This document shows, piece after piece, positions 6,808-49,214 of a stretch of 64,000 nucleotides of DNA (position 1 is its first letter; each line of letters begins with the position of its first letter). Below the pieces are notes generated by a model that saw only the letters and a list, made by a program, of their open reading frames with translations, was not told the DNA's origin and made no database searches. The translations under genes were made by a program, and so were the position numbers. The stretch covers positions 36,517-100,516 of the forward strand of contig NIVC01001985.1 of assembly GCA_002269645.1 (NCBI GenBank), in the 5' to 3' direction. This DNA is from Macrostomum lignano (taxonomy: Eukaryota).

Positions 6808-7654
6808 TTTACTACTCGTCTACTAGCTACTGTCAGTAGTGCAAACGAGGTTTTTGTGCTTAGATTTCAAGAGTCTTATTCCCTTTAAAAAATCGTTAGC
6901 AAACTTTATTTGAAACTTTAAAGCAGATTGAAAATTGAAATTGAAATTGAGAAATATTTTTTTTTAGATAAACTCAAGCTACACATTCATCACTGTTTGA
7001 AAATAATTCCGTTGTAAACTCTCCCCATTTTCGTAGTGCAATTTTTTAAGTTTTTTCCTTTTGATTCTGCATGATAAAAGGAAAATAATCCAATATTATA
7101 TTTTTGCATGACTTCAAGACACTAGCCTGTTTCTGATAGACACATAACTTTACCCAAAATGGAACCTTTATCAACTTATCCGTCCATTCCGCAGTTTCTT
7201 TCTTTTCTTGGGAAATTTTTAAATTTTAAATTTTTTAATTTTTTTTAAAATTGGAGAAATCATGAAAATTTTTTTTTTCAGCCATAATTGTTGATATATA
7301 TTTTCCTATGTATAATCGAGCTATTAAACCAGCAGAACTGCAATTGTGCAAACGTTCTTCTCATCGGGTTTATCACCGCCTGTGCTCTTAATTTTTGGCC
7401 TTCAAGTGCGACACAAACTTTTTATTTGGTTCGGGTTTATCTGTGCTAAATATATGCCCCCCCCTGTCGATTTGTTCTTCTGGAGACCAATTAAATCTAT
7501 GTGTAATTTGCATTATTTTCTTTCCGATGATTAGCAGAAATTAGTCAGTCAATCAATTTATCGGTTAATAAATCAATTAAATATGCAGAGATGAAAATCC
7601 AATTAATTATGCCAATGAGATCGAAAAGAGAGAAAATGCGTCAATCAAAATAAT

Positions 7655-8150
7655 GACTTCAAAACAATCAGTGAGATTAATGAGATCGATGAGTTCACTG
7701 AGATCAATGAGATCAATAAGATCGATGAGATTTATGAGATCAATTATAACAATGAGATCGGTGAGATCAATGAGATCGATGAGATTTATGAGATCAATTA
7801 TAACAATGAGATCGGTGAGATCAATAAGATCAATAAGATCGATGAGATCTATGAGATCAATTATAACAATGAGTTCACTGAGATCAATGAGATCAATGAG
7901 ATCAATGAGATTTATGAGATCAATTATAACAATGAGATCAATGAGATCAATGAGATCGATGAGATTTATGAGATCAATTATAACAATGAGTTCACTGAGA
8001 TCAATGAGATCAATGAGATCGATGAGATTTATGAGATCAATTATAACAATGAGATCGGTGAGATCAATGAGATCGGTGAGATCAATGAGATCAATGAGAT
8101 TTATGAGATCAATTATAACAATGAGATCAATGAAATCAATAAGATTTTCA
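7655..8150. repeat. 9-bp satellite (ATGAGATCA) with 54/63/72-bp higher-order units
   Basis: TTATAAC marker at 7744, 7798, 7861, 7924, 7978, 8041 and 8113, with spacings that are multiples of 9. Accounts for ORF 7653..8153. Confidence 0.93.
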
Positions 8151-9000
8151 TGAAATCGATGGAATCAGTAACGGTTTAAATAGATCAATAATATGATACT
8201 GAATAATTTCAATATCAAGAAACCAATTACAATTTTACTTGATGAAAATTTTCTCCGTTCAAGTTTCAGCACGCGCTAAAAACAGCTCTAGAAAACGGTC
8301 CGCAAACAGCTGCATTGATGCGCGCTCTCTTTGACTGCAAAGGCGGCACCGTAAATGAAAAAAAATACAAATGGACCGAAGCACTAATAAAGATCAACAA
8401 TGCTTGATCCTTTTTAGTTGGTCTGCTTCGGTGCACAACAAAGGTCTATCAGCTATTGTCTATTAATATGAGAATAGCGTGACCAGAAAATGAAGAAGCA
8501 ACACACATACGAGTATTCTTATGTACTGCAGTCCATCGTGCTTATAATTATGTTTATCCTTATTGCTAATATTATTAATAATGTCTACTGAAAATCCTTA
8601 GCTTCAACCTCTCTGTCTGCTCTGTCTCTCTCCCTATCTCTCCCTTTCTCTCTCCCTCTCTCTTTTATTTACACTTCGCGTTCGTATTTGCAACATTGAC
8701 TTTTGTGCTCCCACTTCGATATCTGCATTTCATTTAATTGTTTACTTTGAATAAAAACACTTTTTAACACACTAAATATCCTTTCGATTAAAATGACTGG
8801 TTGAAGCCTCTGGGACAAGGTAGAGCTAGCTCGTAGATAGAACAGTTCATTAGATTTACATCCCTGATATCAACATCCGCTCATCGATTTTACCAGACTG
8901 TTATAAATCATACTTGAAAGACAAACTTGCATTGCATTGTACGCAATTTTTTGGCCTGACAAAGAGGCCAGACAAAGGCTTGAAACCAGTAGCCAGATCT

Positions 9001-10089: not shown

Positions 10090-21043
<10,954 letters not shown>

Positions 21044-21204: not shown

Positions 21205-23085
21205 TACAGGTGATCGGGTGACAGGTGATCTACTGAGAGGTTTGATCCAGTGACATGTTTGATCCAGTGACAGGTGATCCATAGACATGTTTGATTCAGT
21301 GACAGGTGATCCAGTGACAGGTTTGATCCAGTGACAGGTGATCTAGTGACAGGTGATCTACTGAGAGGTTTGATCCAGTGACATGTTTGATTCAGTGACA
21401 GGTGATCCAGTGACAGGTTTGATCCAGTGACAGGTTTGATCCAGTGACAGGTTTGATCCAGTGACAGGTGATCCAGTGACATGTTTGATTCAGTGACAGG
21501 TGATCCAGTGACAGGTTTGATCCAGTGACAGGTGATCTAGTGACAGGTGATCTACTGAGAGGTTTGATCCAGTGACATGTTTGATTCAGTGACAGGTGAT
21601 CCAGTGACAGGTTTGATCCAGTGACAGATGATCTAGTGACAGGTTTGATCCAGTGACAGATGATCTAGTGACAGGTGATCTACTGAGAGGTTTGATCCAG
21701 TGACATGTTTGATTCAGTGACAGGTGATCCAGTGACAGGTTTGATCCAGTGACAGGTTTGATCCAGTGACAGGTTTGATCCAGTGACAGGTGATCCAGTG
21801 ACATGTTTGATTCAGTGACAGGTGATCCAGTGACAGGTTTGATCCAGTGACAGGTGATCTAGTGACAGGTGATCTACTGAGAGGTTTGATCCAGTGACAT
21901 GTTTGATTCAGTGACAGGTGATCCAGTGACAGGTTTGATCCAGTGACAGATGATCTAGTGACAGGTTTGATCCAGTGACAGATGATCCAGTGACAGGTTT
22001 GATCCAGTGACAGATGATCCAGTGACAGGTTTGATCCAGTGACAGATGATCCAGTGACAGGTTTGATCCAGTGACAGATGATCCAGTGACAGGTTTGATC
22101 CAGTGACAGATGATCCAGTGACAGGTTTGATCCAGTGACAGGTGATCGGGTGACAGGTGATCTACTGAGAGGTTTGATCCAGTGACATGTTTGATCCAGT
22201 GACAGGTGATCCAGTGACAGGTTTGATCCAGTGACAGATGATCCAGTGACAGGTTTGATCCAGTGACATGTTTGATTCAGTGACAGGTGATCCAGTGACA
22301 GGTTTGATCCAGTGACAGATGATCCAGTGACAGGTTTGATCCAGTGACAGGTTTGATCCAGTGACAGGTGAGCTAGTGACAGGTGATCTAGTGACAGGTG
22401 ATTTAGTTACATGTTTGATCCAGTGACAGGTTTGATTCAGTGACAGGTGATCCAGTGACAGGTTTGATCCAGTAACAGGTGATCCAGTGACATGTTTGAT
22501 CCAGTGACAGGTGATCTAGTGACAGGTGATCTAGTGACAGGTGATCTAGTGACAGGTGATCTAGCGACAGGTGATCTAGTAACAGGTGATCCAGTGACAG
22601 GTTATCCAGTGACAGGTGATCTAGGGACAGGTGATCTAGTGACAGGTGATCTAGTGACAGGTGATCTAGTGACAGGTGATCCAGTGACAGGTGATTCAGT
22701 GACAGGTGATCCAGTGACAGGTGATCTAGTGACAGGGGATCCAGTGACAGGTGATCCAGTGACAGGTGATCTAGTGACAGGGGATCTAGTGACAGGTGAT
22801 CTAGTGACAGGTGATCCAGTGACAGGTGATTCAGTGACAGGTGATCCAGTGACAGGTGATCTAGTGACAGGGGATCTAGTGACAGGTGATCTAGTGACAG
22901 GTGATCCAGTGACAGGTGATTCAGTGACAGGTGATCCAGTGACAGGTGATCTAGTGACAGGGGATCCAGTGACAGGTGATCCAGTGACAGGTGATCTAGT
23001 GACAGGGGATCTAGTGACAGGTGATCTAGTGACGTGATCCAGTGACAGGTTATCCAGTGACAGGTGATGTAGTTACAGGTGATCT
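21205..23085. repeat. 15/17-bp satellite (GATCCAGTGACAGGT and variants) downstream of TRPC
   Basis: About 1.9 kb array, becoming a pure 15-mer after about 22500. Confidence 0.95.
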
Positions 23086-24795: not shown

Positions 24796-25097
24796 AAAAC
24801 AAACCAGGCAATGCTTTTCAGTATCATCAGCTGTTTCTCAGAGTGTAATTTGTTTTTTCGAGTACCATAAGACACAATTTTCTTAAACGTATGAAAACTG
24901 ATTGAGGCAAGCAGAAATTTACAGATTATAAAGATTGGAACTTAGAAAAAGATAAAAAACAAACCTTAAACCGTTAAAAAACTAACTACGAGCTACACAC
25001 GGTGAATTTTCGAGTCAATTCGTTACGACGATTGAAGATCAGCTAATTTTGTGGCAGCTAAATCGCAAAAAAGTTTTGGATTAAACTTTTTAAAAAT

Positions 25098-25685
25098 CAC
25101 TCTCCAACACACTCCATCACTTCCCAACACACTCAATCACTCACCAACACACTCAATCACTCACCAACGCACTCAATCATTCACCAACACACTCAATCAC
25201 TCACCAACACACTCAATCATTCACCAACACACTCAATCAACACACCAACGCACTCAATCACTCACCAACGCACTCAATCACTCACCAACACACTCAATCA
25301 TTCACCAACACACTCAATCAACACACCAACGCACTCAATCACTCACCAACACACTCAATCACTCACCAACGCACTCAATCACTCACCAACGCACTCCTTC
25401 ACTCACCAACGCACTCCTTCACTCACCAACGCACTCAATCACTCACCAACACACTCCATCACTTCCCAACACACTCAATCACTCACCAACACACTCAATC
25501 ACTCACCAACGCACTCAATCACTCACCAACACACTCAATCACTCACCAACACACTCAATCAACACACCAACGCACTCAATCACTCACCAACACACTCAAT
25601 CACTCACCAACGCACTCAATCACTCACCAACACACTCAATCACTCACCAACACACTCAATCACTCACCAACACACTCCATCACTT
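25098..25685. repeat. 20-bp minisatellite (ACTCAATCACTCACCAACAC)
   Basis: About 29 copies just downstream of the transporter gene. Accounts for ORF 25051..25698. Confidence 0.93.
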
Positions 25686-25735: not shown

Positions 25736-25867
25736 CTACGGCTCGATCTCAATCTCTAGGGGATCGCTGGAGCCGCGCGTCGCCAGATGGGACACTGAGG
25801 ACGAATCCGACAGGTCGCTGAAATCCTCCCCGAAGTCGGAGACGCGTCGGCTCGAGTCGTCGTTTGA

Positions 25868-25906
<39 letters not shown>

Positions 25907-28228
25907 GCCGTTAGCTGTTCCGCCAGCGCCGCCAAGATCTGAGCCGGAGTTCAGGCGAAGCTTCGGGACCTTGAAGCCGGCGCCCGTGCCCGCAGCCTTG
26001 GAACCGGCGCCGCCCGTCAACTGCGCTGTCGCATCCGCCGCCACACCCTCCTTGACGACTGCCTCGCCAGCCGGTTGACGCGGCTGACTTCGACTTCGAC
26101 AAAGCCGACGACAAGCGTCAGCGCCGGCTGCTCCGGCGGCGTAAAGTCGATCGACAATTCGGCTGCCTGCGCACAGCTGCTCGGCCTCCTCCAGGCTGTC
26201 CGGCGGCCGGCTCTGCCGCGTCTCCGGCAGGAACAGCGCCAGGCAGCAGCCGGCCGTGGCCAGGAGGCCACACAGCAGCGGCGGCAGCGGCCGCCAGACT
26301 CCGGCCAGGAGGCCCAGCTGAGCGGCGACTACGCCGCCGACTCTGGCGGAGGTCGAAGCGACGCCGACGCAGGAGTTCCTGGCCGGCGTCGGGAAAGCTT
26401 CGCTGGCGTGCAGCCAGGCCGCCTCAAAGGCCAGCAGGAGGCCGAACCGGCCGAACAGCGCCGCGGCCAGCCGACCGGCGAACCCGGGCGCGCCGGCCGC
26501 TAGCGCAAGCAGCGCCACAGCGCCGACTCCGTTGGCGGCCAGAAGCAGCGATACCCGGCCGCAGCAGCCGCCCGCTGCCATGCCGGTCAGACGGGCGACC
26601 ACCTCGGCTCCGGCGGCCATCGCCGCACCAGCGAAAGCGCCGGTTTCGCCTCCGCCACCACTGCGCTGGACGAGCAGGTCGGACCAGCCGAGCGCCAGGC
26701 CGTAGTAGCCGGCGCTGACCAAGGCGAAGGTGCACCAGACCGTCAGGGCCAGCTGGCGCAGCGGCGGTCGGCGCAGCAGGCTGAGCAGCGGCAGCGCTGC
26801 CGTGGCGTTAGCTGGAGACTTTTGCTTCGGCGCTGTCTGTTCGCTCTGTTCTGCAGGCTGATTCGGTTCGTCTGGGGCTGTCAGGCTTCTGAAAATTGGA
26901 AAAGCCAGATTGCCATAACTTTTGTTGTCATTAAAAGAGCCTATCATTATACAATAAGACGCAATTATGAATTGATATGACTCTTGAGGAGTGGATAGAA
27001 TGGACGAGGCTGAAAGACCCGAAAAGAGACGAGAAAGGTAAACTTGAGTAGAGTAGAGTATAATAGTAGAGTAGAGTAGAGTAGTTCGTCTAAAGAAAAA
27101 TTTGAGTAGAGTAGCGTAGAGTAGATTAGGTTAGAGTAGAATAGAGTAGTGTACAGTACAGTAGAGTAGATAAGAAACTTATGGGGAGCAATAATAAAAC
27201 TTATTTAACGCTTCAGACCCCGCTCCCCAACCTGGCTGCGAGCGGCTGCTCGGACTGTTCCACCTGTTGCTCCTCTTGCCGCTGTACCGGGCGCTGTTCC
27301 AACAGGCGCTGCAGCCGGCCGGCCGACCGGTTGACGCGGGCGATCCGGCGCAGTGCCGCCTCGGCGGCTGCTGCCCGACCGCGCATCAGCAGCCAGCGCG
27401 GCGACTCGGCGGCGAACAGCCACGCGGGGGGCAGCAGCAGCAGCGCAGGTGCCGACGCCAGAAGCTCCGTGGTTCGCCAGTCGCGAGTCCACATGGCCGC
27501 CCCGGCCAGGGCGAGAAGGCCCAGACTCCAGCCATTCTTCATCAGCAGGCTGAGCAGAAACCGGTCGCCATTGTGCAGAGTCTCGGCGTGCCAGGTGTAG
27601 CTGACGCTGAGCAGGCCGGCCGAGGCGAAGCCGGCCAGGCAGCGGAGGGCGGCGTAGGTGATGACGTCCTTGGAGACTGCGCCCACCGAGCCTGCGACGG
27701 CGAGGTTCGCGCAGGCCGCGGCGAAGGCGCCCCGGCGGCCGCACCGGTCCGACAGCAGGCCGTAGCAGGTGCTGCCGGCCAGAAAGCCGAGCATAAACAT
27801 CACCTTGACAACCGTTGCTAGGTAGTCTCGGTCGCACACGAGCTGAAATGTTTCTAGCGCCGTTTCTGTCATCTGACGATCGCTAAAGACCAACCGTTGG
27901 CAACTTGTGCCAGTCCAGTTTGCTGTGCAGGCGTCCATGACTCCAGCAGTGAAGTTGTAAGCCATTGCTGCACCGGAGCTATTCCGGATATCCGGGTCAT
28001 CAGCAGCCGCTGACGCGCACACGAACGGCCTGCGCAGTAAAGTGAAGTTGACTGACAGGGTCTGCATAGCCGGCAGGGCCGCCGCCAGCGCCATCAGGCA
28101 GAGAAAGCCGGCCTGGTAGGCGCGGCGACGGCCCACGGCTTCTAGGAGCTCCTCGCATGTTGGCGGCCGCTGCGGCTGCTGCTGGGCAGGCGGCTCAGCC
28201 AGTTTGAAGTTCGTATGGCAAAGCAGCT
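25736..28228 (-). CDS. SLC22-type organic cation transporter (MFS); exons 28228-27232 and 26888-25736; start exon unresolved
   Basis: Motifs FQLVCDRDY, MLGFLAGS...LSDRCGRR, LRCLAG, AESPRWLL, GRFG...F...W(LH)ASEAFPTPARN and LPETR are SLC22 hallmarks. A phase-2 GT-AG intron (27231-26889) joins ORFs 27213..28136 and 25736..26947. No in-frame ATG lies upstream of 28228; a possible micro-exon ATG GCG CCA CGA CTA G at 28608-28593 is phase-compatible but speculative. Confidence 0.88.
27045..27170. repeat. (AGAGT)n degenerate microsatellite in the transporter intron
   Basis: Directly visible. Confidence 0.85.
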
Positions 28229-30772: not shown

Positions 30773-31359
<587 letters not shown>

Positions 31360-31426: not shown

Positions 31427-31813
31427 TCAGTCGAAGCAGTCCCGCAGACAGTGCAGGTAATCGTGGTACAGGTTGAACCAGCCCAGGGTGCTGTCACCGG
31501 ACTCGCGGACCGTGCCACCCGTCCGCTGGCTCGAGTAGTACTCGCGGAACCGGCGCATGTTGTCGCGCATCTCGGCGGTCAGCTCGGCCCGATGCCTGTC
31601 CTGCATTCGCTTGACATAGTTGCTGACAAGAAACGGCCGCAGCTCGGCGTCGGGACCGACAAACACGCGACGCGAGCCCGAGTGAAACCGGAAGGTGCAC
31701 CATTGGCGGCAGCGGATGTCGGACAGGCTGTTGATGTGATTGGCTGGCCAGCTGGCCCGAGCGCCTCCGATTGCAAGGATTAGCGATAGGCTTAGCAACG
31801 GGATCAGCCGCAT
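31427..31813 (-). CDS. Orphan secreted protein or peptide precursor, 128 aa, twin CxxxC
   Basis: Hydrophobic signal peptide MRLIPLLSLSLILAIGGARA, Cys at 35/39 and 122/126, dibasic sites R48R49, K68R69 and R87R88. GC-rich coding-like codon use. TTGTCTTCAG acceptor about 37 nt upstream of the ATG. Confidence 0.75.
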   Translation of the reverse strand: MRLIPLLSLSLILAIGGARASWPANHINSLSDIRCRQWCTFRFHSGSRRVFVGPDAELRPFLVSNYVKRMQDRHRAELTAEMRDNMRRFREYYSSQRTGGTVRESGDSTLGWFNLYHDYLHCLRDCFD

Positions 31814-32744
31814 GTCTTTCGGGGCTTCTCAACACTTGACTTTGACAGAACTGAAGACAAGGCAAGCGGGAGCAGAGCGGGCGGCGGGTCTCAGCTTGTG
31901 CAAACAGCCTGTGGCGCTGCGGGTTTTACCGAGGGCACGGCGTGTGGGTGAGGACTGAGCGGCCAGCTACTCAGCTCACACGGGGTGCTGATAAACTGCT
32001 GTGGGGAACTCGATAAGACTTCAGTAACCTGAATGACCGCCACCCCGGTGGGTGGGGGGGGGGCAGAACTCTGCTTTAGAGGCCAAAGGTGACACTGGAT
32101 AATTGTGTGCACTTGTGTGAAGCAACGGAAATCTTGCCTACTGCAATTTTCCTGATAGTTTTTCTTTGTACTTCTTGAGTTCTTTCTCAGTGCCGATATC
32201 AAAACAGAAGCGCTATTATTCTCTGTTGCTTCTCAGAGTTTCCGGCTCTTGTGAAATCGGTTTGATTTATCAGAGCGCTTTTTACCTCTTCTTTCCTGCT
32301 GTTTCAGGCCCTGCGCATGTACTCGAGTTGATTCTGCCCGATAGAGGCAGAGTCCTGAGCAGCAAAGCAGATTTCTCACAAGCTGCACACGCTAGCGGCA
32401 ACTTCATGGACAAATAAGGTTTCTAGATTAGATAGCTGGAGCAATCTGAATAGATGCCTTGAGCACCACCTAGCATGTTGTATTGAGATCAGGAGCCGCT
32501 GCCGTCTAGGTTAACAAGTGTGAAAGAAGTGTTCTTGCATTGGAGCTCAATTATTAACGAAGGGACGACTTGGAGTAGCAGAAGGACGAAACATTTCGTT
32601 TCTAAGAAACTGTTTACAAATTAGCTTCTCACGAAAAATGCTTCTATAGGTCTTTATTGGAAACACAGAGTAAATGATCATCTATTAATATTTTACATAA
32701 ATTGTCTGTTTTATTGCTTTATTGATTTTTTCCGCCTCGATCAT

Positions 32745-34670
32745 CTAACCCCATCTAGCCCCATCAACCTCATTTATCACCATCTAGCCCCATCTAGCCC
32801 CATCAACCTCATTTATCACCATCTAGCCCCATCTAGCCCCATCTAACCCCATCTAGCCCCATCAACCCCATTTATCACCATCTAGCCCCATCTAGCCCCA
32901 TCAACCCCATTTATCACCATCTAGCCCCATCTAGCCCCATCAACCTCATTTATCACCATCTAGCCCCATTTAGCCCCATCCACCCCATTTATCACCATCT
33001 AACCCCATCTAGCCCCATCAACCCCATTTATCACCATCTAGCCTCATCTAGCCCCATCTAGCCTCATCTAGCACCATCTAGCCCCATCTATCTCCATCTA
33101 GCCCCATTTATCCCCATTTAGCACCATCTAACCCCATATAGCCCCATCAACCCCATTTATCACAATCTAGCCCCATTTAGCCCCATCCACCCCATTTATC
33201 ACCATCTAGCCCCATCTAGCCCCATCAACCCCATTTATCACCATCTAGCCTCATCTAGCCCCATCTAGCCTCATCTAGCACCATCTAGCCCCATCTATCT
33301 CCATCTAGCCCCATTTATCCCCATTTAGCACCATCTAACCCCATCTAGCCCCATCAACCCCATTTATCACAATCTAGCCCCATTTAGCCCCATCCACCCC
33401 ATTTATCACCATCTAGCCCCATCTAGCCCCATCAACCCCATTTATCACCATCTAGCCTCATCTAGCCCCATCTAGCCTCATCTAGCACCATCTAGCCCCA
33501 TCTATCTCCATCTAGCCCCATTTATCCCCATTTAGCACCATCTAACCCCATTTAGCCCCATCAACCCCATTTATCACAATCTAGACCCATTTAGCCCCAT
33601 CCACCCCATTTATCACCATCGAGCCCCATCTAGCCCCATCAACCCCATTTATCACCATCTAGCCTCATCTAGCCCCATCTAGCCTCATCTAGCACCATCT
33701 AGCCCCATCTATCTCCATCTAGCCCCATTTATCCCCATTTAGCACCATCTAACCCCATATAGCCCCATCAACCCCATTTATCACAATCTAGCCCCATTTA
33801 GCCCCATCCACCCCATTTATCACCATCTAGCCCCATCTAGCCCCATCAACCCCATTTATCACCATCTAGCCTCATCTAGCCCCATCTAGCCTCATCTAGC
33901 ACCATCTAGCCCCATCTATCTCCATCTAGCCCCATTTATCCCCATTTAGCACCATCTAACCCCATCTAGCCCCATCAACCCCATTTATCACAATCTAGCC
34001 CCATTTAGCCCCATCCACCCCATTTATCACCATCTAGCCCCATCTAGCCCCATCAACCCCATTTATCACCATCTAGCCTCATCTAGCCCCATCTAGCCTC
34101 ATCTAGCACCATCTAGCCCCATCTATCTCCATCTAGCCCCATTTATCCCCATTTAGCACCATCTAACCCCATTTAGCCCCATCAACCCCATTTATCACAA
34201 TCTAGCCCCATTTAGCCCCATCCACCCCATTTATCACCATCGAGCCCCATCTAGCCCCATCAACCCCATTTATCACCATCTAGCCTCATCTAGCCCCATC
34301 TAGCCTCATCTAGCACCATCTAGCCCCATCTATCTCCATCTAGCCCCATTTATCCCCATTTAGCACCATCTAACCCCATCTAGCCCCATCAACCCCATTT
34401 ATCACCATCTAGCCTCATCTAGCCCCATCTAGCCTCATCTAGCACCATCTAGCCCCATCTATCTCCATCTAGCCCCATTTATCCCTATCTAGTCCCATCA
34501 ACCCTATTTATCACTATCTAGCCCCATCTAGCCTCATCTAGCCCCATCTAACCCCATCTAGCCCCATCTATCCCCATTTAGCCCCATCTAGCCCCATCTA
34601 GACCCATCTAGCCCCATCTAGCCCCATCTAGACCCATCTAGCCCCATCTAACCTCATCTAACCTCATCTA
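32745..34670. repeat. 10-bp satellite (ATCTAGCCCC) organised in 207-bp and 621-bp higher-order repeats
   Basis: TCTCC marker at 33091, 33298, 33505, 33712, 33919, 34126 and 34333 (period 207). Rare variants recur at a spacing of 621. Confidence 0.95.
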
Positions 34671-34674
34671 GTTT

Positions 34675-34995: not shown

Positions 34996-36073
34996 TAGCT
35001 CAGAAGTCTCACGGTTCAGTGGGCTCCAGCTGATTCTTTCAATCTTCTGTTATCGTCTTCCCCAAACGTGAATAACAGAACAAGCTCAGCTACAAAAACT
35101 GAACCCGAAAATGCTTTTGACCTCGAAATCTGCAGACGCCTCACGGGGTGATTGACAGCCAGATAGCAGGTGAAAAATTATCAAGAATCGACGCAGTTCC
35201 AGTTCGAATTCGAGATAAAAATGGTTCACTTTTAACAAATATTAACATGCAAAGTTATGTAATACGAAGTCATATTATTCAACATTTTACATACAGAGGA
35301 GAACAGAAATTATTATAACTGAAATTTGCGTTTCTCAAGAAATCAACTACTTTTAGTAGAAGCTTCGGATATCTTCAGCTAATTTTATTGGTCGCCAATA
35401 TTGAGCGTAGTTTTAATCGAATCGTAGTAGTACAATAATTATAGTCTCGCTTTGCTCATTTCTCGTTAGCTCGTTCTCTTCCTCTCGCACGCCCCTTGCA
35501 ACACACACACACGCACACTGGCAGTTCTCTCCCTCCTTTCATTTCTGATAAAAACCATAGCAGTGGTTGTCGGGTACTCGCAGCAGACCCCCCCGCACTC
35601 CACCGGCCCACCTGTACGATATTGACGCCTATATCTATCCTCTCCCACACTACCCACAGTACTCAGCCACCCTCCCTGCAGCAATAGTGAAATTTCTACA
35701 CATTTTCAAAAGCCAAGCTGCAGAGCAGGCAGAGAGACAGGGGAGGCAGGGGGGCAGATGAGCATTTTTTAACAAAGCAGAGATGCACAAGCAAGGAAGA
35801 AATTTCAGTGCAACATCAGGAGTGCCTCAGCCTTCTCCTCCTTCCCAGCTCAACCCTCTCTCCCAGTCGCCGTGAGCACAAGCCAGTCCAGCCCACCCCC
35901 ACCACCAGCCCGCTATCTCGTACTCTTCTTTTGAGCAAATCTTTAAGCAATTTTGGTTGCCAAGGGCCTCCCCACACCTTTCCAAGGCTCACAAAACACA
36001 GGGCGAGAGAGAGAGAGGGAGAGACGGGCAGACAGACGACACAGACAAGACGCTCTCGAGCCTGTCGTGTACC

Positions 36074-39000
36074 ATGGAGGACACAGAGCTCTACCGCCTC
36101 ATCTGCAATCCCAGCCGGGCGAACTATGCGCGAGCCCTCAGCCTGCTTGACGAGCTCGAGCTCACCGAGGTTCGGCGTCGATCCACCGATCAGCAGAACA
36201 GCTACCTGCACTTGGTGGTGCTAAATCTAAAGGCTCTGGCCGGCAGGTGCGGCGGCGACGTCCGGCCGGCGGTGCCGCTGCTGTACAAGCTGGCACTTCG
36301 TGGCTGCGACGTGAACGCGCAGAATCGAGTGGGCAACACGGCGCTGCACACCGCCTGCTTCAGGCCGCTGGGCGACCGGCTGGTGCAACACCTGATCCGA
36401 CTGGGTGCGCGCCAGTTATTGCAGTTTTCTTATCTATCTCTTTGAACGATTGGTTCTGACTGCTTTACTGCTTAATATGCCTGTTTTCATGTCTGTAAAA
36501 GGATTTCAGGTTTAGATAAAGTCTGTAAGAGTCTGTTAGATATAGGTAAAGTCTGTAAGAGCCTGTTAGATATAGGTAAAGTCTGTCAGAGTCTGTTATG
36601 TTAGATTTAGATAAAGTCTAAGAGTCTGTTAGATATAGGTAAAGTCTGTAAGAGTCTGTTAGATATAGGTAAAGTCTGTAAGAGTCTGTTAGATATAGGT
36701 AAAGTCTGTAAGAGTTTGTTAGATATAGGCAAAGTCTAAGAGTCTGTTAGATATAGGTAAAGTCTGTAAGAGTTTGTTAAATATATAGGCAAAGTCTAAG
36801 AGTCTGTAAGACACTCGTGAAGTCTGGTAGAGCCTGTGGGATATATGAAAGTAAATATTAGAATCGGTGGTACTCATCTGAGTACACGTTTAAGTCTGTA
36901 TGAATCCATTACGCGGCATCAATGCAGTCCGTACAAGTCCGTTAGCTACTCGTAACGTTTGCAAAAGTCAATTAAATGCGCACGAAGTCAAAGGCTGAAA
37001 GAGTGCATCCGAAAAACCTCCAACCAATCAGGCATCGACCCGGGCATCACGAACGAGATGAACTCGCGGGTCATCCACGACAACGCTCAGCACAAGGCCT
37101 GGCTGGTGCGAGGTCAGAAAGGTGCAAAGTGCAGCCTGTGGAGCGCAGGTGAGTGACGTCACCGGAAGAGACGCTGATCGAGCCGCATCATTATTCCGCA
37201 ATAAATAAGTGAATTCCTATAAAAATTTAATTTTAATATTGATCAAGAGCAGAATAACGACTTTAAATTCAAACAGCACATTTAAACATGTATTTTATAA
37301 GTCCAAAACACTGAAATTAATCCTAAAAAACTTTTATTCAAGTCTGCGACGGCATCTGGTATGCAGGTAAAAATGGTGTAATTTATTGTTGATTTGCAAA
37401 ACTGATCACAGGAAAATTTATATTGAACTCTTCGACTGACGTTTGTTTGACTCTATTTCATTGTATTGTTTGTTTTTTCATTTCTGTCTTTTCGTTTCTG
37501 TGCTCACACACTGTCTGTCACCGAACCGCATGCCCCACTGAAAGGAAGGTTGCTCATTATTTATGCTAATCATGCACGCAGCTTTTCGAATCTGGCAGTC
37601 ACCACCACTCACGGTCGCGAGCGCGCACAGTTTTTTCCTTTCGGGTTTCTGTCACGTGATCGAATTCTCGCATTTTCAGCTCAGGATTACAGGCTCATTA
37701 ATTACAGAAAAAACCTGTGTTCTGCATTTTTGAATGCTATAAATATAGCTTTATTTGACTTAATTTTGTTTGAATGCTCTCAAAAAGATCTTCTAGTCTC
37801 AAAATCGGTTTTAACTTATCTACCTAAATTATACGGGTAGTTTTATCTGTAGAAACATGTACTTTCATATCGGACAGAGGTGCATTTCAAGCTAGTAATT
37901 TACTTTACTTAGGACATCAATTACAGCTTCTATCTATCACTCGCATGCTTGTAAAATAAACAATCAATAGTTGCTCGAGAGGACAAAGAGTTAATGATTC
38001 GCTACCTGACGTCCTGGGTTCGAACCGAGTGTCGACGACGACGCAAGACCCTGATGGATTTGGCTTTCGAGACGGGAAACTACGAGATTGTTGAGCTGTT
38101 GAAAAAGTACACCAGCACTAATGAGCTGGTCTGCGCTGCGCTCGCCTGCGACGTCAAGCGGGTGAAGCAGATGCTGGCTCTGAAGTCCGGTGAGATGGGG
38201 CGCTCGTTGTAGCAACCTGGATACAGGGCGTTGCATTCAGGTTCATGAGTTAAATACCCTATTTCAATTAGCTATACAGCTCATGAGTTCAAGCAGTACT
38301 TTAGTCCAGAGTTCTGAAAAAAGGGACAGCCACTGCAGGGTGGGGTCTAGCTGTTCTCAAAGAGGAACAGCCACTGCAGGGTAGGGTCTAGTTGTTCTCA
38401 AAGAGGAACAGCCACTGCAGGGTAGGGTCTAGCTGTTCTCAAAGAGGAACAGCCACTGCAGGGTAGGGTCTAGCTGTTCTCAAAGAGGAACAGCCACTGC
38501 AGGGTAGGGTCTAGTTGTTCTCAAAGAGGAACAGCCACTGCAGGGTAGGGTCTAGTTGTTCTCAAAGAAGAACAGCCACTGCAGGGTAGGGTCTAGTTGT
38601 TCTCAAGGAAGAACAGCCACTGCAGGGTGGGGTCTACGCTCGTAGTTGTTCTCAAAGAGGAACAGCCACTGCAGGGTAGGGTCTAGTTGTTCTCAAAGAG
38701 GAACAGCCACTGCAGGGTAGGGTCTAGTTGTTCTCAAAGAAGAACAGCCACTGCAGGGTAGGGTCTAGTTGTTCTCAAAGAGGAACAGCCACTACAATCT
38801 CTAGGCGCTCCCAAAGGAAAACAAATATTACAGGATCTACGGGTTGTTAAGGGGATGGCAGCTCACTGCAAAGCTTGAACAAATTTAACCGTCCCGCTTC
38901 GCCAGACAAGCCGAATCTGCGCACTAAGGATACGTCGCAGAAGGTGCCGAAGCCTCTGCTAGCCGAGGTGAAGACCCTGTCTGGCATAGCCGAGGCTGAC

Positions 39001-41909
39001 AAAGTCTATCAGCTGCTCAAAGCGGCCGGTGCGATAGGCGAGGAAGAATACTTCGGTGAGTTCTGAAGTTCAAAGGCAACAGAAATAAAAGGGAATATGT
39101 TGATGTTAAGTATCTTCATCAGAAATATAATTTATCTGCTTTGTGCTTCATACCGACGCAGAGCAACTGGAGAGCAGCAAGAATGCCTTTCGATCCGCCA
39201 AATTTGTGGCCCTGGTGGAAGAAATGTCGGCCGACAGTCTGGAGGACGCCTGGCAGCAGTTGCACAATCACCGGGTGGATCTTGACTGCACGGACCCTGA
39301 GACTGGCGGCACCTATTTGCACTTCTTGGTGCAGCAGTGAGTCATATTTTTACAAGCTAGCTATTTTCAATTCAAGCCAGCTAAGTTCTATGCTTGTTGC
39401 TCCATTCCCTAATTGTTCCTAGCTACCTGGCAACGGAAGAGCTACAGCTGAAGCGCCTACTCATTCGCCTGATGTACAAGACCGCTCTCGAAGGTGTCGA
39501 TGTTCACGCTCGCAACAACAAAGGCGAGACGGTTCTTCTGGCAGCCTACAGTCAGCCGCCGGACCGCATCCTACTCGACCATCTTATCTGCCTGGGCGTG
39601 GACGCTTCGGTGCGCTCCAACAGCGGTCACGTGATCATGCAGAACACCTACGCCACCCGGGGCGACCTGGTACGCCAGCGCCGACACACCCGACGCCTGC
39701 TGCCGGGTCTGCACGTGGCAGTTGAAGACGGCGACTTGGAGCGGGTGCGCCACTGGCTTGGCTGCCTGTGCCGCGTCAACGTCTCCAAGAACGGGCGCAG
39801 CCTGGCCGAACTGGCGCGCGACATTGGCGACGAAGCCATCCAGCAGCATCTGGAGGACAGCCTGCACGGCTGCGAATTCGCGGCCGCGTCCATTGCCGGC
39901 GACCTGGATCGAATGAAGCACCACATTGCTATGGGCGCAGGAGAAAAGAAGGTCAACGCCTGCTACCGGTAGGTTGCATCTACTACATGTACTTGCAATG
40001 GCAGTCAAGGGGGTCGCATCTACTCATATAATGGTATAAGCTCAATAAGTTATGCGCTGATAATTCTTAAAGCATGATTTACTCTTGTAACACTCAAGAA
40101 CACAACATGTGGTGTAAAGTTCTTTGAAAGGCCCCTGTCGTCACTATTCCAGCTATTACTTTGCTGGCTTCACGGACGACTGGCGAGCCGAATTCGTGCC
40201 CCGCCCGCTCATAGCTAGCGTGATGGAGTACGGCTCTGCCAAGATTGCCAGTTTCCTGCTGCAGTTCGGCGCCCGGCTTGACGTCCAGTACGAGGAGTGC
40301 GCGCCGTGCGGACCCGTCGCCTTCTGGGCATTCAGAGACGACATCGCTAGCGACGTCACTGAAGCGATCGCGGCTCACGTGGACGTCCGACTGCGCGACG
40401 AGCTTGGCCGGACCATTCTGCACGCGGCCGTGATGAAGGACGATAATCCGGCTGCAAAGTGCCGGGTGGTTGAGCAGCTGCTCTCCCGCGGTGCCAATGT
40501 GGCCGCTCGGGACATGCGCGGTTGGACGCCTCGCGACTACTGCACCAAGGGAGGCGTCGTTGGAGGCTCCCGTCTCGGCCAGATCATCGATGACTTCGTC
40601 CTGAATCTGTCCTACGTGGGCGACATTGACGCCATCGAGCAGCTGATCATCGACGGCTACAATCACATCAACGACATTCGAGGCACGTCGCGAAACAAGA
40701 CCGCAAAAGAATTGGCCACGCTGCGGTACTACAAGGAGCTGCTTGAGCTGCTGGATGAGGAGCCCAAGTACCACGAGGAAATCGAGCTAATCCATACGGC
40801 CGTCATCAACGACGATCGCAAGGGCTTCGTCAAGTTCGCCAATGAGAAACGTGTGCCTCTCGGCGTTGACAGGCGTGGCAGGAATCTTCTCCACATGGCC
40901 GTGCTAATGGAGAACCACGACATGGTGGCGGCCATCTGCGAGCAGTTCCCCCAGATGATCTACAAAGGCGACAACCTGCTGAGGACGCCTGTGCACTACG
41001 CTGTCTGCATCCGCGATCAGCGCGCCACTCTATCTGTGATCTCAACTTCCAACAGCGTCGACATGTCAGCAAAAGATGCTGTAAGTAGTAGCGAATGGGA
41101 AATAATTTTAGATTCAAAATATAGTAATTTAGATCCATCATAGAAGGTGTGCTATCCAGTTAGGGGCTTGTAGCCTGGTGGTCAGAGCGTCGGACTCACG
41201 AATTGAAGGTCGGGGGTTCGATTCTCGACCAAACTCGGAACAGTTTGTGTCCTTGAGCAAGAAAGACACTTAACTCTGCATTGCTTCAGTCCACTCAGTT
41301 GTAAAATGGGTGCCAGCCTTGGACTGAACCCCCCCCCCAGGCCTTGGACTGAACCCCCCCCCCAGGCCTTGGACTGAACAGCCCAGGATAGCTGAATAGC
41401 TGCGGCAGATTTTATTATTATCCAAATCCTATTGGAATAATAATCGCATAAAATTTTCCTTCAACGACATTCAGTGTTAGTTGGCTGCATATGCTTCACA
41501 AACCTCGAGAAATTGTGGAATATTTACTTGAAAAGCATTTCTATCAATGCCTAAATTCACCAGAACAACCTGAGCGTGCTGGAATACATTGATCAGCTAG
41601 ACAGGCCCACGCCAACAAAGCTGAAAACTCGAGGCAGACGAACGCATGACTACAGGGTGAGGACAGATCGATTCAAGTTCATTTAAAAAAAAATTCTCTG
41701 TGATTACACAGATTAGTCACCCGTAATCCCAGGTCGGCGATCTGCTTGAGACTGAGCGCAACGAGACGCCTCAGTACTTAGCCAGGCTGGCGGCCGAGGC
41801 CGAAGCCAGGGCAGAAGCGGAAGAAGCGAGCGCGGACCGGCTTGGTGCCGAGGCAGTGGATCCGGGCTCTCCTCGCCAGCTGCGTGAGGCCATCGACTCT
41901 GCCGCCTGA
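36074..41909 (+). CDS. Ankyrin-repeat protein, 9 exons, 911 aa, with a tandemly duplicated N-terminal module
   Basis: Exons 36074-36404, 37032-37148, 37971-38189, 38906-39055, 39162-39336, 39423-39968, 40153-41080, 41564-41656, 41733-41909. All GT-AG and phase-compatible; total 2736 nt. Ankyrin motifs include DVNAQNRVGNTALHTAC, DVHARNNKGETVLLAA, DELGRTILHAAV, RDMRGWTPRDY, DRRGRNLLHMAV and DNLLRTPVHYAV. Confidence 0.85.
36490..36840. repeat. 30-bp minisatellite (TTAGATATAGGTAAAGTCTGTAAGAGTCTG) in ankyrin gene intron 1
   Basis: TTAGA recurs at 36536, 36566 and onward. Confidence 0.9.
38328..38795. repeat. 41-bp minisatellite in ankyrin gene intron 3
   Basis: CAGCCACTGCAGGGTAGGGTCTAGTTGTTCTCAAAGAGGAA, about 11 copies. 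Confidence 0.93.
41161..41420 (+). mobile_element. tRNA-derived SINE with CORE-like domain (copy 2, ankyrin gene intron 7)
   Basis: TAGCCTGGTG (A box), GGTTCGATTC (B box), TGTGTCCTTGAGCAAG..ACACTTAACTCTGCATTGCTTCAG..GTAAAATGGGTGCCAGC shared with copy 1. GCCTTGGACTGAAC is triplicated around poly-C, and the end AATAGCTGCGGC is shared. Confidence 0.85.
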
Positions 41910-42334: not shown

Positions 42335-43191
42335 AATTAAAGACTTGTTCAGATTTCTTGGGAGAATTTATTTGGGAGAATTTGGGAGATTAACAAATTT
42401 TCAGACGATCGAAACCATAATTATTATAAAAGCAGCCTGAAGTCCCAGTTTCAGTTGCAAAGCGCAATATCTACCTAAACCGAACTCTAATAGCCAGGTT
42501 GTAAGGAAAACGTTTTTTAAAAATGACTCAAACCCTGTTTTTCAGAAATTCGCAAACTTCGGATTGAAAATCGTTTGCAAAAGTTAAACAAATAATTATC
42601 CGCCCCTGCTAGCTATAGAAATATGAGAAACTGATGCCTGTGACACTAATTTGAGTCATAATCTTTGGGAATATTTTTAATAAGCCGCCTATTTTCAAAT
42701 AAACAAAATATTGGCAGAAAAAGTGCACTTTTTTAACAATAAAATTGACGAAACTGTAACGTGTCCGATATCAGAAAGGTATATTTAACTTTATTCTTCT
42801 TTTATTAATTACTTCATAGCAAATTAAATAGCTAGCGCTGGTGTTGCCAATACTCATGGCTCTGAATTGGTTATAGAAAGCCAAGTTTGATTTTACAGCT
42901 TCATCCCGACTAAACTGGTCAGTAGACATGAAAATTCCAGGAATTCTAGGATCGCACCAGCTTAATTATTATCTTCATCAACTATAATCAGTTAAATAGT
43001 CACTGGATTTAGGTAGCTTAATAACTTTTTTCACTGTTAATATCGTCAAACAGCAGCTCAAATTGAAAGAATTTCATCGGTAACGCTTCAGCCTTCAGTT
43101 CACAGTTTTTGTTTAACAAAGGTCGCTGTATTTTTCGGAGAGCGATAGAAGTGGGGGATTCGATCTCTAAGACAGACGCAGGATTGCCTAT

Positions 43192-43818
43192 TTATCCCTG
43201 CTGGAACGGCCAGACGTGGATGCGATCGCAGAACAGGCCGTAGGCGACGCACATTCGCACCTTCATCGGGAAAAGCAGATCGTCCTGCCGCTTATCAAAA
43301 AATCCTCGCTTTTTAAAGTAGTCGCGCTTGTTGATGAAGCCGCGCTTGTTGATGAAGCCGCGCTTGTTGATGAAGCCGCGCTTGTTGATGAAGCCGCGCT
43401 TGTTGATAAAGCCGCGCTTGTTGATTAAGCCGCGCTTGTTAATAAAGCCGCGCTTGTTGATGAAGCCGCGCTTGTTGATGAAGCCGCGCTTGTTGATAAA
43501 GCCGCGCTTGTTGATGAAGCCGCGCTTGTTGATAAAGCCGCGCTTGTTGATAAAGCCGCGCTTGTTAATAAAGCCGCGCTTGTTGATGAAGCCGCGCTTG
43601 TTGATGAAGCCGCGCTTGTTGATAAAGCCGCGCTTGTTGATAAAGCCGCGCTTATTAAAGTCGAGCTCCGTATCAACGCCTGCCTGCTCCTCCCAGTCAT
43701 GCAAGTTTGGCGACGCTGCCGGCATTGTTGTCCCCGATGCTTCCCTGCAGAGAATGGCACAGGCGGCAATGGTCGCCACTGCAATCAGCCAAGTTAGACG
43801 AACCAGCTGGGCAGTCAT
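43192..43818 (-). CDS. Achatin-like neuropeptide precursor (17x GFIN, 1x GLIN, 1x GFFD, KR-flanked), 208 aa
   Basis: Signal peptide MTAQLVRLTWLIAVATIAACAILCREASG, acidic spacer, 18 tandem G(F/L)IN-KR units, then DYFK-KR, GFFD-KR and a C-terminal Q...C-x6-C...QQG peptide. Repeat variation falls at third codon positions (TTC/TTT, ATC/ATT; one TTA giving Leu). A 5'UTR GT-AG intron lies at 43902-43825. Confidence 0.88.
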   Translation of the reverse strand: MTAQLVRLTWLIAVATIAACAILCREASGTTMPAASPNLHDWEEQAGVDTELDFNKRGFINKRGFINKRGFINKRGFINKRGFINKRGFINKRGFINKRGFINKRGFINKRGFINKRGFINKRGFINKRGLINKRGFINKRGFINKRGFINKRGFINKRGFINKRDYFKKRGFFDKRQDDLLFPMKVRMCVAYGLFCDRIHVWPFQQG

Positions 43819-46800
43819 GTCTCACTGTGGGAGGGACGAGTTTCACTGTGTGAATGGGCTTCATGCAGAAAGCAGTGCGGCAGAAGCTACAGTAGGACTC
43901 ACCTTCTGTCTTCAAGGGTGGCTGAGATGCTTTTTCCTACAGGTTTCCGAATGCGGCGCGAAGAATCTCTGGCGGTAGTCGGACGCTAGCCGAATATAAA
44001 CACAAATCCGCTGCCTCTGCCTCCCGGTTCTGACTGGATAAAGTTGATTAAATCAGATTATTCAACAGATTTGAATTTTTTCATTTTATTAAACTCATGC
44101 CAGATGAGGCCACAAGTTTAGCAGTCTGCTGCTAGACAGACTCAGTAATCTTTGGAAATCAAACATTTCAATTTTAGCCCCTTGTTTATCTCAGCCTCGA
44201 CTGAGGTTCAAACTGCATTAAAAATAGGAGATGCCTGGAGACTAATTTAATCCCGAACGTCAATTTCGAATGGCATAATTGAATTCTATTTCAAGACTGC
44301 GTGCGTGACGTCTTTTTGAGAGATTTAAAAGCATAAAAATGGATATGGGAACTGCGTCAAGACTGGCCCTGCTATTTTGATCAGCTAAACGTTAACTAAA
44401 CTTAGCGAGCCACAAAGCAGCAGAGATAAGTTACCGTTCAACCTGAAAGCTTGCAGGTAACATGCAAAATGCATTTTTTTTATCAAAATCGCACTATGAC
44501 AGTGTGCATGCAGATGCTAATGTACAGACCAACTCTATACTTGTGCTTTGTAGAGCACTGGGCTAGCTGCTATGTACAAGATAGTCTATTGGTAAGCCTT
44601 GGACATGTAGAGTACAGTTTTTTTGCATAGAAAATAAGCATACGCTCGTAGTCGTAGCTTTTTCTGTAAAACAAAACACTATTCAAGGCCAAAGCTGTAA
44701 GAAAGCACTTCAAACTATCAAAATATTGATTTGACAGTGGATTTATAACATACGACTGGCCTTTGAGACGCTAAAAAAGTAAGTATTGTCGTATTTTACA
44801 TTGCACTCGCATTTACGTACATGTATATAATGTTAAAATTTCAACAACTAATTATATACTGTATCTACTTGACAGACAGTCTCAGAATACACGTATGTAT
44901 ATTATTTATGCAACAAACTTTCCGGAATCCGGAAGTATATTTTCTACCCTTCAAAATTCGGCCTTCTAAAACTTAAAGGCACATGTTACTAAACATAGCA
45001 AAAACGATAGAATTAGATAATGCTTGTGTTTTCAATTTCACAAATTAGGTAGGAGATGCTGATTGCGCATGAGTGAGTAGCTACAGCCTTCATGACACCA
45101 TTTACTCGTACTAATTAGTTCAAGACAAGTAAGTGCCTCTCAACTGCTTCAATTCCATTAATCTGTAGCACAGCTCCACTGCTGCAATGCAATGGACTTT
45201 CGATCATAGTTGACACTATAGTTGTATAGCAAATGTAACAGTATATAACATCAAATCGCGCTCACTCACAGAAGTATAGTATAGCTGAAAAGAGTTGCGA
45301 GAAGAGTCAATGGCTCCTTTTGCTTGCCCGAGTGGCTCCACTTTCTACCAACTCAATCGGTAAAGTGGTTTTTGTCAATGGTGCAAACTCTCCGCTTGAA
45401 TGTCTGCCCCACGCCAGAGGCCGAGGTCGAGCGCTAGTGGATATATGTCAGGTGCAGTCTTGCTTTTTAGTTTATGGTATAAACCCCAAATTCGCAGCCT
45501 GTCCTGTGCGACTAAATCAATCAGCCATGGGTTGGAGTTTGTGTCACAGACGCTTTTCAGTATAGTAATGTCTATGGCTGAAACCTCAAGTTTTCCATAC
45601 CCTTGGCTGACTGGCAGCACTGAGTATTAAGCTTCATTTCCAGCTTAGGCAGTTTTAATTGATTTTAATCTTAAAATGTGCATGTACATTTTCGTTGGGA
45701 TGGTAAAGATTTTGGCAGAGCGTCTCGCTCTGTACACCGCCGGATGCGATGGTCATCAGAGCCGCGGCAGACATGCGGACCATCGCCATGCAGAATGAGT
45801 TACACTCACTTGGAGGCCACCGCTGATTTAGATGGTTGGGCAGCAAATGCCTGTGGACGCTGCTTACACTTTACCGGTGAGTGTCCGACTGAGTGCATGT
45901 AAGCCAGTCCAGCAGGCATGCACGAGCCCTGCTAAAGCTTCTCTGTGCCCGTATACTCACCCACGCACAGGTAACGCAGCGCAATCTGAATGGGCTGACG
46001 ATGGAAGCTAGTCACATTCCCGCCCCATTGGCCGCGGGCATCTCAGCAGTAGGATCAGCTTGTTCAGCTGCAGCAGCGGAGGAGGAGCAGTCGGCGACTT
46101 CGCAGCAGCTTCCAAAAACAATTGAAGAGAGCTTAGAGAGTCTGAGCATCATCTGGTTGGCTCTTTGGAGTCACACACAGAAAAATTCTGTGCCTTGCCC
46201 ATCGCTTTCACAAGCATTGCCGCACCCTTCGGCTTGTGCTGGAGGGGTCTGGCGCCAGCTGCATCAGAACAGCAGACGAGTAGCGTCGAGTCCGATGACG
46301 ACGACAATGGCGGCGACGGCTGCGGCAGTGGCAGAAAGGGATGGAACCAGTCCACGCTGGCTACAAGGGTGCATAGCAAACTAATTGAGTATATTGACCG
46401 CAAGTCAGAGCGCGGGATCCATGCGGGGCGGCGACTGGTCGGCCTAGGGCGCTATGAACTGCTTAACAATAGCCATGCGCAGTCTCGGGATCGCGACGCT
46501 GTACGATTTGACAGATGGACAACGCCAACGTCAGGCCATGATTGCTGCCCTTCGTGGTCAGCTGGTGACTCCGCGCACCGCTGCCAGGCGACCTCCAATT
46601 TGCCTTTTAAGCGGAGTACATGCTGGACAAGGCTGCCCGCCAGCGAGCCTACGAGAAGCGACACTTCACGACGCCGAACGCCGATCGTTAGGGATGCATT
46701 GTGAGGCCGGCTTTCTGCGACATGCTGCTGGATGCCGCTGGTGGTCGGGCAGACAGGGTTCCGGCCTGACGCGATCAGGCGCGGTAATAACGATGGGAGC

Positions 46801-48512: not shown

Positions 48513-49214
48513 ATGGCAAAGCACTATCTCGCTATTCTGATTTGCTGCATCATGGTAGCCACGTCTGTAGCCTCTGTTAGCAGCCTCCACAAGGAGCAGA
48601 AGCAGCAGCAGCAGCAGGATTTCTGTACTAGCCGCGACGACAGCGACTGCAACAAAGTTCCACCCAAGTCAGACGTCGCCACTGATCGTTGCTCCGAGTG
48701 GGCCCGCGCCGAAGCCGCCTCGGAAACTGTGCCAGACTGGCTACACCGGCTGCGCATCCGCTATCCTTGTCCGAGCGATGCGGCCGCTGCTACTGCTGCT
48801 GTTAACGATGGAACCTGGCGGAGCGACTTTTGCTGCCGTGGCGCCGCGTCTAGTTCGACGAATGCAGGCTCATGGCTAGCAGCACCCAGCTGGCTGAAGT
48901 CCTGGCTGTGCGGCGGCCCAGACTGCGGCTTCCACATCGGGGCGGACTTCTGCGTGCGCAGCTGGCCGCTGGAGCTGCCTGACGGAACGTCGGCCAGGCA
49001 GCAGTGCTGCTACGACGATCATGGTCAGCTGCTGACGGACCCGACGGTTGGCGCCGGAACATCGGATCGACGAGCGGACATCTTCGGCCACTGGTCGGTG
49101 GATGTCCGTCCGTTTTTGGCCTGCTGCCAACTGACCGACGGAAGCAATAAGCTGGCTATGAAGAGTCCCAGCTGCGCTGTGTACTATAGCAGACGGCCAC
49201 CGAATTTCAAATGA
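48513..49214 (+). CDS. Secreted stand-alone AMOP-domain protein (isthmin-like, no TSP1 repeat), 233 aa, single exon
   Basis: Signal peptide MAKHYLAILICCIMVATSVAS. The pattern C.EW...YPCP...FCVRS...ARQQCCYDDHGQLLT...GAGT...H...DVRPFLACC...Y..RRPPN matches the AMOP consensus of isthmin/SUSD2/MUC4. Confidence 0.85.
   Translation: MAKHYLAILICCIMVATSVASVSSLHKEQKQQQQQDFCTSRDDSDCNKVPPKSDVATDRCSEWARAEAASETVPDWLHRLRIRYPCPSDAAAATAAVNDGTWRSDFCCRGAASSSTNAGSWLAAPSWLKSWLCGGPDCGFHIGADFCVRSWPLELPDGTSARQQCCYDDHGQLLTDPTVGAGTSDRRADIFGHWSVDVRPFLACCQLTDGSNKLAMKSPSCAVYYSRRPPNFK

Follow-up and report, generated by a model that had tools for sequence, protein, structure and literature searches.

The Question Raised by the Locus

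On contig NIVC01001985.1 (216 kb) of the Macrostomum lignano assembly GCA_002269645.1, a called gene for a 208-residue protein is dominated by an 18-nt tandem repeat, and the question it raises is whether this frame encodes a precursor of achatin-type neuropeptides, some other secreted repeat precursor, or nothing at all. The window analysed here is a 64,000-nucleotide stretch of that contig (positions 36,517 to 100,516 of the forward strand), and all coordinates below are counted from its first letter.

There is firm evidence for achatin signalling in molluscs, annelids, nemerteans and hemichordates, among others, and the bilaterian achatins are "usually tetrapeptides". The forms known include GdFAD in Achatina, the apALNP peptides GFFD and GYFD (GdFFD and GdYFD) in Aplysia, GFGD in Platynereis, and GFGN in Saccoglossus, Branchiostoma, priapulids, Xenoturbella and nemertodermatids, the last of which may be the ancestral form; in known precursors they stand in strings such as RRGFGNKR and AGFGNKR. 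Achatin-type receptors have been identified for the Platynereis and Saccoglossus peptides, and the achatin-receptor clade corresponds to "b-unchar-3", which adjoins the vasotocin, GnRH and CCAP receptors. The D-residue has been described as conserved across protostomes and deuterostomes. In Aplysia, an extract of the central nervous system can isomerise analogues of GFFD whose second residue is Phe, Tyr, Trp or Leu. The isomerase is known as this extract activity and has no gene assigned to it, so it cannot be searched for by homology.

Anatomy of the Gene and Its Precursor

The reading frame lies on the minus strand, and its parts, together with those of the putative transcription unit around it, are the following (a slash within letters marks a boundary).

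43192 to 43818, minus strand: complete coding sequence, ATG to TAA, 208 codons plus TAA, probably a single coding exon
43732 to 43818, minus strand: predicted signal peptide, residues 1-29, MTAQLVR / LTWLIAVATIAACAILC / REASG, from hydropathy
43648 to 43731, minus strand: acidic N-terminal spacer, residues 30-57, ending in a degenerate unit D-F-N-K-R (GAC TTT AAT AAG CGC)
43324 to 43647, minus strand: spacer-less array of 18 x 18 nt, 17 GFIN-KR and 1 GLIN-KR, consensus GGC TTY ATC AAC AAG CGC
43414 to 43431, minus strand: the lone GLIN-KR unit (TTA for TTY), the sole non-synonymous change inside the array
43306 to 43323, minus strand: diverged unit DYFK-KR (GAC TAC TTT AAA AAG CGA), 6 nt off the consensus, basic pair kept
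43288 to 43305, minus strand: diverged unit GFFD-KR (GGA TTT TTT GAT AAG CGG), a canonical mollusc-type achatin
43195 to 43287, minus strand: C-terminal tail QDDLLFPMKVRMCVAYGLFCDRIHVWPFQQG, 31 residues
43825 to 43902, minus strand: putative 78-nt intron in the 5' UTR, donor GAAG/GTGAGT, acceptor CTCGTCCCTCCCACAG/TGAGACATG, proposed from likeness to the GT-AG junctions of a TRPC gene in the same window
43993 to 44000, minus strand: putative TATA-like element TTTATATT, some 90 nt 5' to the proposed donor
42790 to 42806, minus strand: candidate poly(A) signals some 390 nt past the stop, namely two AATAAA hexamers (42806-42801 and 42795-42790)

The original prediction had counted 17 GFIN-KR units, one GLIN-KR and one GFFD-KR at 43192-43818, and both the counts and the coordinates proved correct when the frame was split and a pattern search was run. 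Cutting after each KR leaves a 57-residue N-terminal piece, 17 GFINKR, one GLINKR, DYFKKR, GFFDKR and the 31-residue tail, while a mismatch-tolerant pattern search of the whole window returned exactly 18 unit copies, every one of them in the array, where 0.09 would be expected by chance. Tandem Repeats Finder describes the array as 18.4 copies of period 18 with 95% matches (43323-43653).

The N-terminus, whose signal-like segment reads MTAQLVRLTWLIAVATIAACAILCREASG and stands outside the repeat array, has a basic R7, a 17-residue hydrophobic core and the small-residue motif A-S-G at positions 27-29. The best 12-residue Kyte-Doolittle mean of the core is 2.69 (11-residue means reach at most 2.59), so that by hydropathy, the sole basis of the signal prediction, the protein begins as an achatin-type precursor does. 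The signal peptide is likely to be cut after A-S-G, a site placed by the -3/-1 rule, and is followed by the acidic spacer TTMPAASPNLHDWEEQAGVDTELDFN, and then KR. The window contains 88 ATG-initiated frames of at least 60 codons. The present one leads them with 21 KR sites, against 4 in the runner-up, and in no other do KR sites go together with a signal-like start. These two features support the architecture that had been proposed, a secreted, KR-processed precursor of many tetrapeptide copies.

The start codon at 43818 has a purine at -3 and the TAA stop occupies 43194-43192. Upstream, this frame is closed by a TGA two codons ahead of the ATG, and both remaining frames that enter from that side soon run into a stop. 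The proposed acceptor of the 5' UTR intron is the pyrimidine-rich CCCTCCCACAG; a short non-coding first exon would end at 43903, and removal of the intron would take out an out-of-frame upstream ATG at 43864. Alternatively, this acceptor may serve in trans-splicing. A second potential donor, AAG/GTGCGA at 43261/43260 (past codon 186), is probably unused, as the tail beyond it is exon-like in its codon-position GC and in its preferred codons.

The tail QDDLLFPMKVRMCVAYGLFCDRIHVWPFQQG is of interest in its own right, with a Gln directly past the KR, two Cys six residues apart and a Gly as the final residue before the stop, which are the hallmarks of a pyroglutamate, a disulfide loop and a C-terminal amide. 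By these features it may be a second bioactive peptide.

Several other loci share the window. A TRPC-like channel gene with TRP_2 and ankyrin domains has at least four exons at 10090-14214 on the plus strand, its introns almost filled by (GTTA)~141, (ATAG)~159 and a 21-nt minisatellite. Its best match among database proteins comes from M. lignano itself yet shares only 81% identity, pointing to a paralogue or to the copy of another subgenome. An MFS or sugar-transporter-like gene (Sugar_tr, MFS_1) with GC of up to 64% and two large ORFs lies at 25736-28136 on the minus strand, and a multi-exon ankyrin-repeat gene with a called product of 911 residues lies at 35957-41143 on the plus strand, directly downstream of the 3' end of the peptide gene. 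Two further frames have signal-like starts, namely a 233-residue ORF at 48513-49214 (plus strand) with an AMOP domain (Pfam E 2.3e-9), probably one of the exons encoding a secreted or adhesion-type protein, and a 128-residue ATG-ORF at 31427-31813 (minus strand), whose strongly signal-like N-terminus begins MRLIPLLSLSLILAIGGARA and which adjoins a perfect (ATCT)~147 microsatellite at 30773-31359.

A Coding Repeat or a Minisatellite

Tandem repeats are abundant throughout the window, where 54 Tandem Repeats Finder rows reduce to about 30-35 distinct arrays of micro- and minisatellites, with repeat-rich stretches, for example, at 7653-8153, 15450-16178, 21206-23084, 25095-25684 and 32742-34671. 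Many of the periods are divisible by 3, and such arrays give rise to long, evidently meaningless ORFs, which calls for caution in ORF-based gene calling across the M. lignano genome.

Against this background it must be asked whether the peptide frame is itself no more than a minisatellite without coding function, open in one frame by chance, or else a pseudogene in decay. Several of the neighbouring arrays contain artefactual long ORFs of just this kind (7653-8153, 15450-16178 and 22492-23037), and the N-terminus matches no protein in any database searched. The variation within the array also speaks less clearly than had been supposed. The original prediction took the near-absence of amino acid changes between the copies as the sign of a selected coding repeat, and it is the case that the variation is limited to unit positions 6 (T/C/A) and 9 (C/T), both of them third codon positions, with TTT/TTC and ATC/ATT synonymous and the single TTA converting Phe to Leu. 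The order of the unit types, aabbcaababbcdabbbb, shows block duplication, and the variation among the units comes down to about three mutations, one changing Phe to Leu and the other two synonymous. With so few events the argument from synonymous variation is weak and is not significant alone.

The conclusion that the repeat is coding nevertheless stands, the real evidence for coding constraint being the diverged flanking units and the codon usage. The GFFD-KR unit has diverged from the consensus at 7 of its 18 nucleotides; five of these changes are of the synonymous type and two alter an amino acid (I to F and N to D), leaving G, F, K and R intact. As a random single-base change to the consensus would be synonymous in only 20% of cases, five of seven has a probability of about 0.005 by a binomial estimate. 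Taken together, the DYFKKR and GFFDKR units carry 13 changes and have lost no basic residue (P ~0.03); both have stayed in frame and kept their KR. All six codons of the consensus GGC-TTC-ATC-AAC-AAG-CGC are the commonest synonymous codon in the confident exons of the same window. Over codons 187-208 of the non-repeat tail, GC by codon position is 0.64/0.41/0.86, where local exons have a GC3 of 0.85, and right past the stop GC drops to 0.39; from this exon-like composition and the fall beyond the stop, the tail is probably coding too.

Two alternative frames through the array were examined and rejected. The ORF on the opposite strand (43328-43978, with a TTG start and LLMKPR repeats) has neither an ATG nor a signal sequence, and there the array variation is non-synonymous (M/I); the other minus-strand frame through the array likewise has no ATG or signal and reads the variation as non-synonymous. 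An ATG that comes straight after an in-frame stop and opens a signal-like segment outside the repeat is likewise hard to reconcile with a minisatellite. With this ATG, the putative TATA element, 5' UTR intron and poly(A) hexamers make up a coherent setting for a gene, and the assembly has the same 208-residue product as a called gene. In light of these observations, a minisatellite or pseudogene origin is improbable, and the locus very probably encodes a real, secreted, KR-processed multi-copy peptide precursor of one kind or another.

The Search for Relatives

An exhaustive phmmer scan of 1.84 billion representative proteins gave 293 matches, all of them through the repeat region; none reached E<1e-30 and none involved the N-terminus. 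The best 150 of the 293 are nearly all unrelated proteins with a 6-residue periodicity, many of which rank above the one that is achatin-like. That protein, the uncharacterised Oratosquilla oratoria XP_076053535.1 (P0209; E 5.5e-7), is the sole neuropeptide-type precursor among those best 150. It contains KRGFGDKR four times and KRGFWDKR once and shares with the flatworm precursor the KR-ended 6-residue periodicity and the GF-x-D motif, a likeness that accords with an achatin assignment at the level of the motif. In contrast to the M. lignano array, its GFxD-KR units alternate with a 4-residue KR-ended spacer to give a 12-residue period, and outside the repeats this arthropod protein has nothing similar to the M. 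lignano precursor.

Other searches returned little. Neither the full ORF nor a de-repeated construct found a match in a word-index protein search, a negative that carries little weight because the query protein itself is absent from that collection. None of the 257 pattern matches in a scan of metagenome loci was confirmed, and a search for paralogous or allelic contigs by way of exact neighbouring proteins led back to the same contig only. A sequence search of the PDB returned only collagen, an artefact of the periodic Gly that reveals how non-specific a repeat with Gly at every sixth residue is. The Pfam results were of a similar nature. The full ORF (43195-43818, minus strand) scores 31.6 bits against PF23986 (Pam3_gp59, a phage family), above the cut-off of 27, and this match disappears for the repeat-free N-terminus and for the de-repeated construct and falls to 21.4 bits with three repeats, identifying it as a repeat-inflated artefact and a false positive above the gathering threshold. 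DUF5530 stayed below threshold.

The Pfam scan bears on a different reading of the gene, in which it would encode a repeat protein of non-neural glands, such as a prostate or seminal fluid, adhesive or antimicrobial protein, with furin-like processing or none. Nothing in the sequence specifies neurons, and gland secretions also contain dibasic-processed repeat precursors. The scan found no structural or adhesive domain, however, and the perfect KR after every fourth residue, the neuropeptide-sized products and the achatin motif fit a prohormone better, making a gland product an improbable explanation.

The literature was searched for the peptide as well. No paper in the searchable literature contains GFINKR, and none has GFIN together with "neuropeptide". 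The original prediction held that a D-amino-acid peptide system of this kind is not known to be described in flatworms, and no report of a flatworm achatin was found in the literature searched (to which the catalogues of McVeigh 2009 and Koziol 2016 do not belong). In the searched portions of the Thiel 2018 and De Oliveira 2019 supplements, GFINKR is absent, as are KRGF, GFFD, GFGD, GFIN, GFGN and GYFD from those of the Collins 2010 supplements. Conzelmann et al. 2013 recorded Schmidtea as having no recognisable achatin orthologue. The strings KRGF, GFFD and GFGD are absent from the planarian prohormone catalogue. As for the parasitic flatworms, achatin is reportedly not on Koziol's 2016 list of their conserved peptide families.

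Achatin by Descent or by Convergence

What, then, is the kinship of the precursor? In it, as in the known achatin precursors, a predicted signal peptide stands ahead of several tetrapeptides of the form G-F-x-D/N, non-amidated and set between dibasic sites; dibasic flanks, a Gly-Phe start, an Asp or Asn end and the lack of amidation are together the achatin signature on which the identification is based. The fit that had been claimed for the motif was confirmed: the GFFD copy has exactly the sequence of the achatin-like peptide of Aplysia, and GFIN conforms to G-F-x-N. The wider pattern G-[F/Y]-x-[D/N] with dibasic flanks is matched by the 17 GFIN units and by GFFD, while the GLIN unit departs from it at residue 2. 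The units read ...N-K-R and ...D-K-R and would thus leave a free, non-amidated C-terminus, as in achatins.

Arrays of near-identical short copies in tandem between basic sites, with unequal crossing-over, are also a feature of the FMRFamide-type and the flatworm NPP/FLP prohormones. Those peptides, in contrast, are amidated by virtue of a Gly that precedes the basic pair, and no repeat unit here has a Gly ahead of its basic site, whether GFIN, GLIN or GFFD; the motif differs as well. The sole pre-stop Gly of the precursor is its very last residue, outside the repeat units.

Other features set the M. lignano precursor apart from known achatins. An Ile at position 3 was found in none of them, although this is the position at which the family is already variable (A, F, G and W). 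The 18 array copies abut one another and are near-identical in DNA, whereas the achatin precursors compared have spacers between most copies. The Cys-containing and possibly amidated tail is a further difference, as is the occurrence in a phylum with no reported achatin. The Asn end is not among these distinctions. It was put forward in the original prediction as an uncharged novelty of this lineage, which does not hold, since GFIN shares it with the GFGN already present in hemichordates, amphioxus, priapulids and xenacoelomorphs. The accompanying picture of a GFIN expansion beside an ancestral acidic copy survives in part. The near-identical DNA of the GFIN units points to their recent amplification or homogenisation, and the GFFD copy is old, but the label "ancestral" cannot be attached to the acidic form when GFGN may itself be the ancestral one.

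The similarity to achatin precursors is at the level of a motif, namely four residues and the KR sites, and it is at this level that an independent origin has to be weighed. The gene could be a lineage-specific, secreted, KR-processed precursor that arrived at an achatin-like G-F-x-N/D by convergence and acts on some other receptor with no D-residue involved. Many clade-specific multi-copy peptide families exist in flatworms and xenacoelomorphs, achatin is reportedly absent from planarians, the Ile3 and the spacer-less array are atypical of achatins, and beyond the four matching residues no sequence similarity was found outside the repeats. The need for care is illustrated by Thiel et al. 2021, in which a glycine-rich sequence that is not a neuropeptide clustered spuriously with achatin precursors. 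Set against convergence is the co-occurrence of the tetrapeptide length, the N-terminal Gly-Phe, the non-amidated D/N end and the dibasic flanks in a single protein, in addition to a copy that is exactly GFFD and that, old as it is, has kept its G, F, K and R. Convergence is considered a possible, though rather unlikely, origin, and on balance the gene is judged somewhat more probably than otherwise to be an achatin-type prepropeptide and an achatin orthologue. From the shared motif and its setting, we infer common descent with the achatins. If the achatin identification is right, Macrostomorpha kept the achatin and the rest of the phylum lost it.

Proposed Processing and Signalling

As an achatin-type prepropeptide, the protein would enter the secretory pathway by means of its signal peptide, prohormone convertases would cleave past each Lys-Arg, and an enzyme of the carboxypeptidase E type would trim the basic residues. 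The predicted products are 17 GFIN, one GLIN, one GFFD, a DYF(K) fragment, the acidic spacer and the Cys-containing C-terminal peptide, with the tetrapeptides not amidated because no Gly precedes the KR. By analogy with the achatins, the tetrapeptides would be neuropeptides acting at a rhodopsin-type GPCR of the achatin-receptor clade, and an L-to-D isomerisation of residue 2 would probably precede their action on the receptor. The range of residues that the Aplysia extract accepts at position 2 includes both Phe and Leu, suggesting that residue 2 of GFIN and of GLIN would be permissive for such a step.

The array itself would have been expanded or homogenised through unequal crossing-over in the recent past, in a genome highly prone to tandem repeats, while the GFFD copy at its edge would be old and retained by selection. 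A more far-reaching proposal, and a tentative one whose several parts may well not all be right, is that M. lignano retains a working D-amino-acid achatin system that was lost in planarians and probably in parasitic flatworms, with a previously unseen GdFIN (17 copies) as the main ligand next to a conserved GdFFD, perhaps at differing receptors, and with a C-terminus that may yield a disulfide-bridged peptide capped by pyroglutamate and an amide.

Significance

The M. lignano precursor is a probable addition to the known achatin family, in a phylum that was thought to lack achatins. It reveals no new kind of system; what is unusual here is the Ile at position 3 and the spacer-less, recently amplified array of 18 copies. 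If confirmed, the finding would add the Platyhelminthes to the phyla with achatin signalling and would support the view that the early-branching macrostomids have kept ancestral bilaterian genes that planarians and parasites lost. It would also open the L-to-D isomerisation of peptides, a reaction whose enzyme still has no identified gene, to study in an animal that is genetically tractable and amenable to RNAi. Lastly, an old GFFD copy that sits beside a freshly amplified GFIN array amounts to a natural experiment on the diversification of ligands within one precursor.
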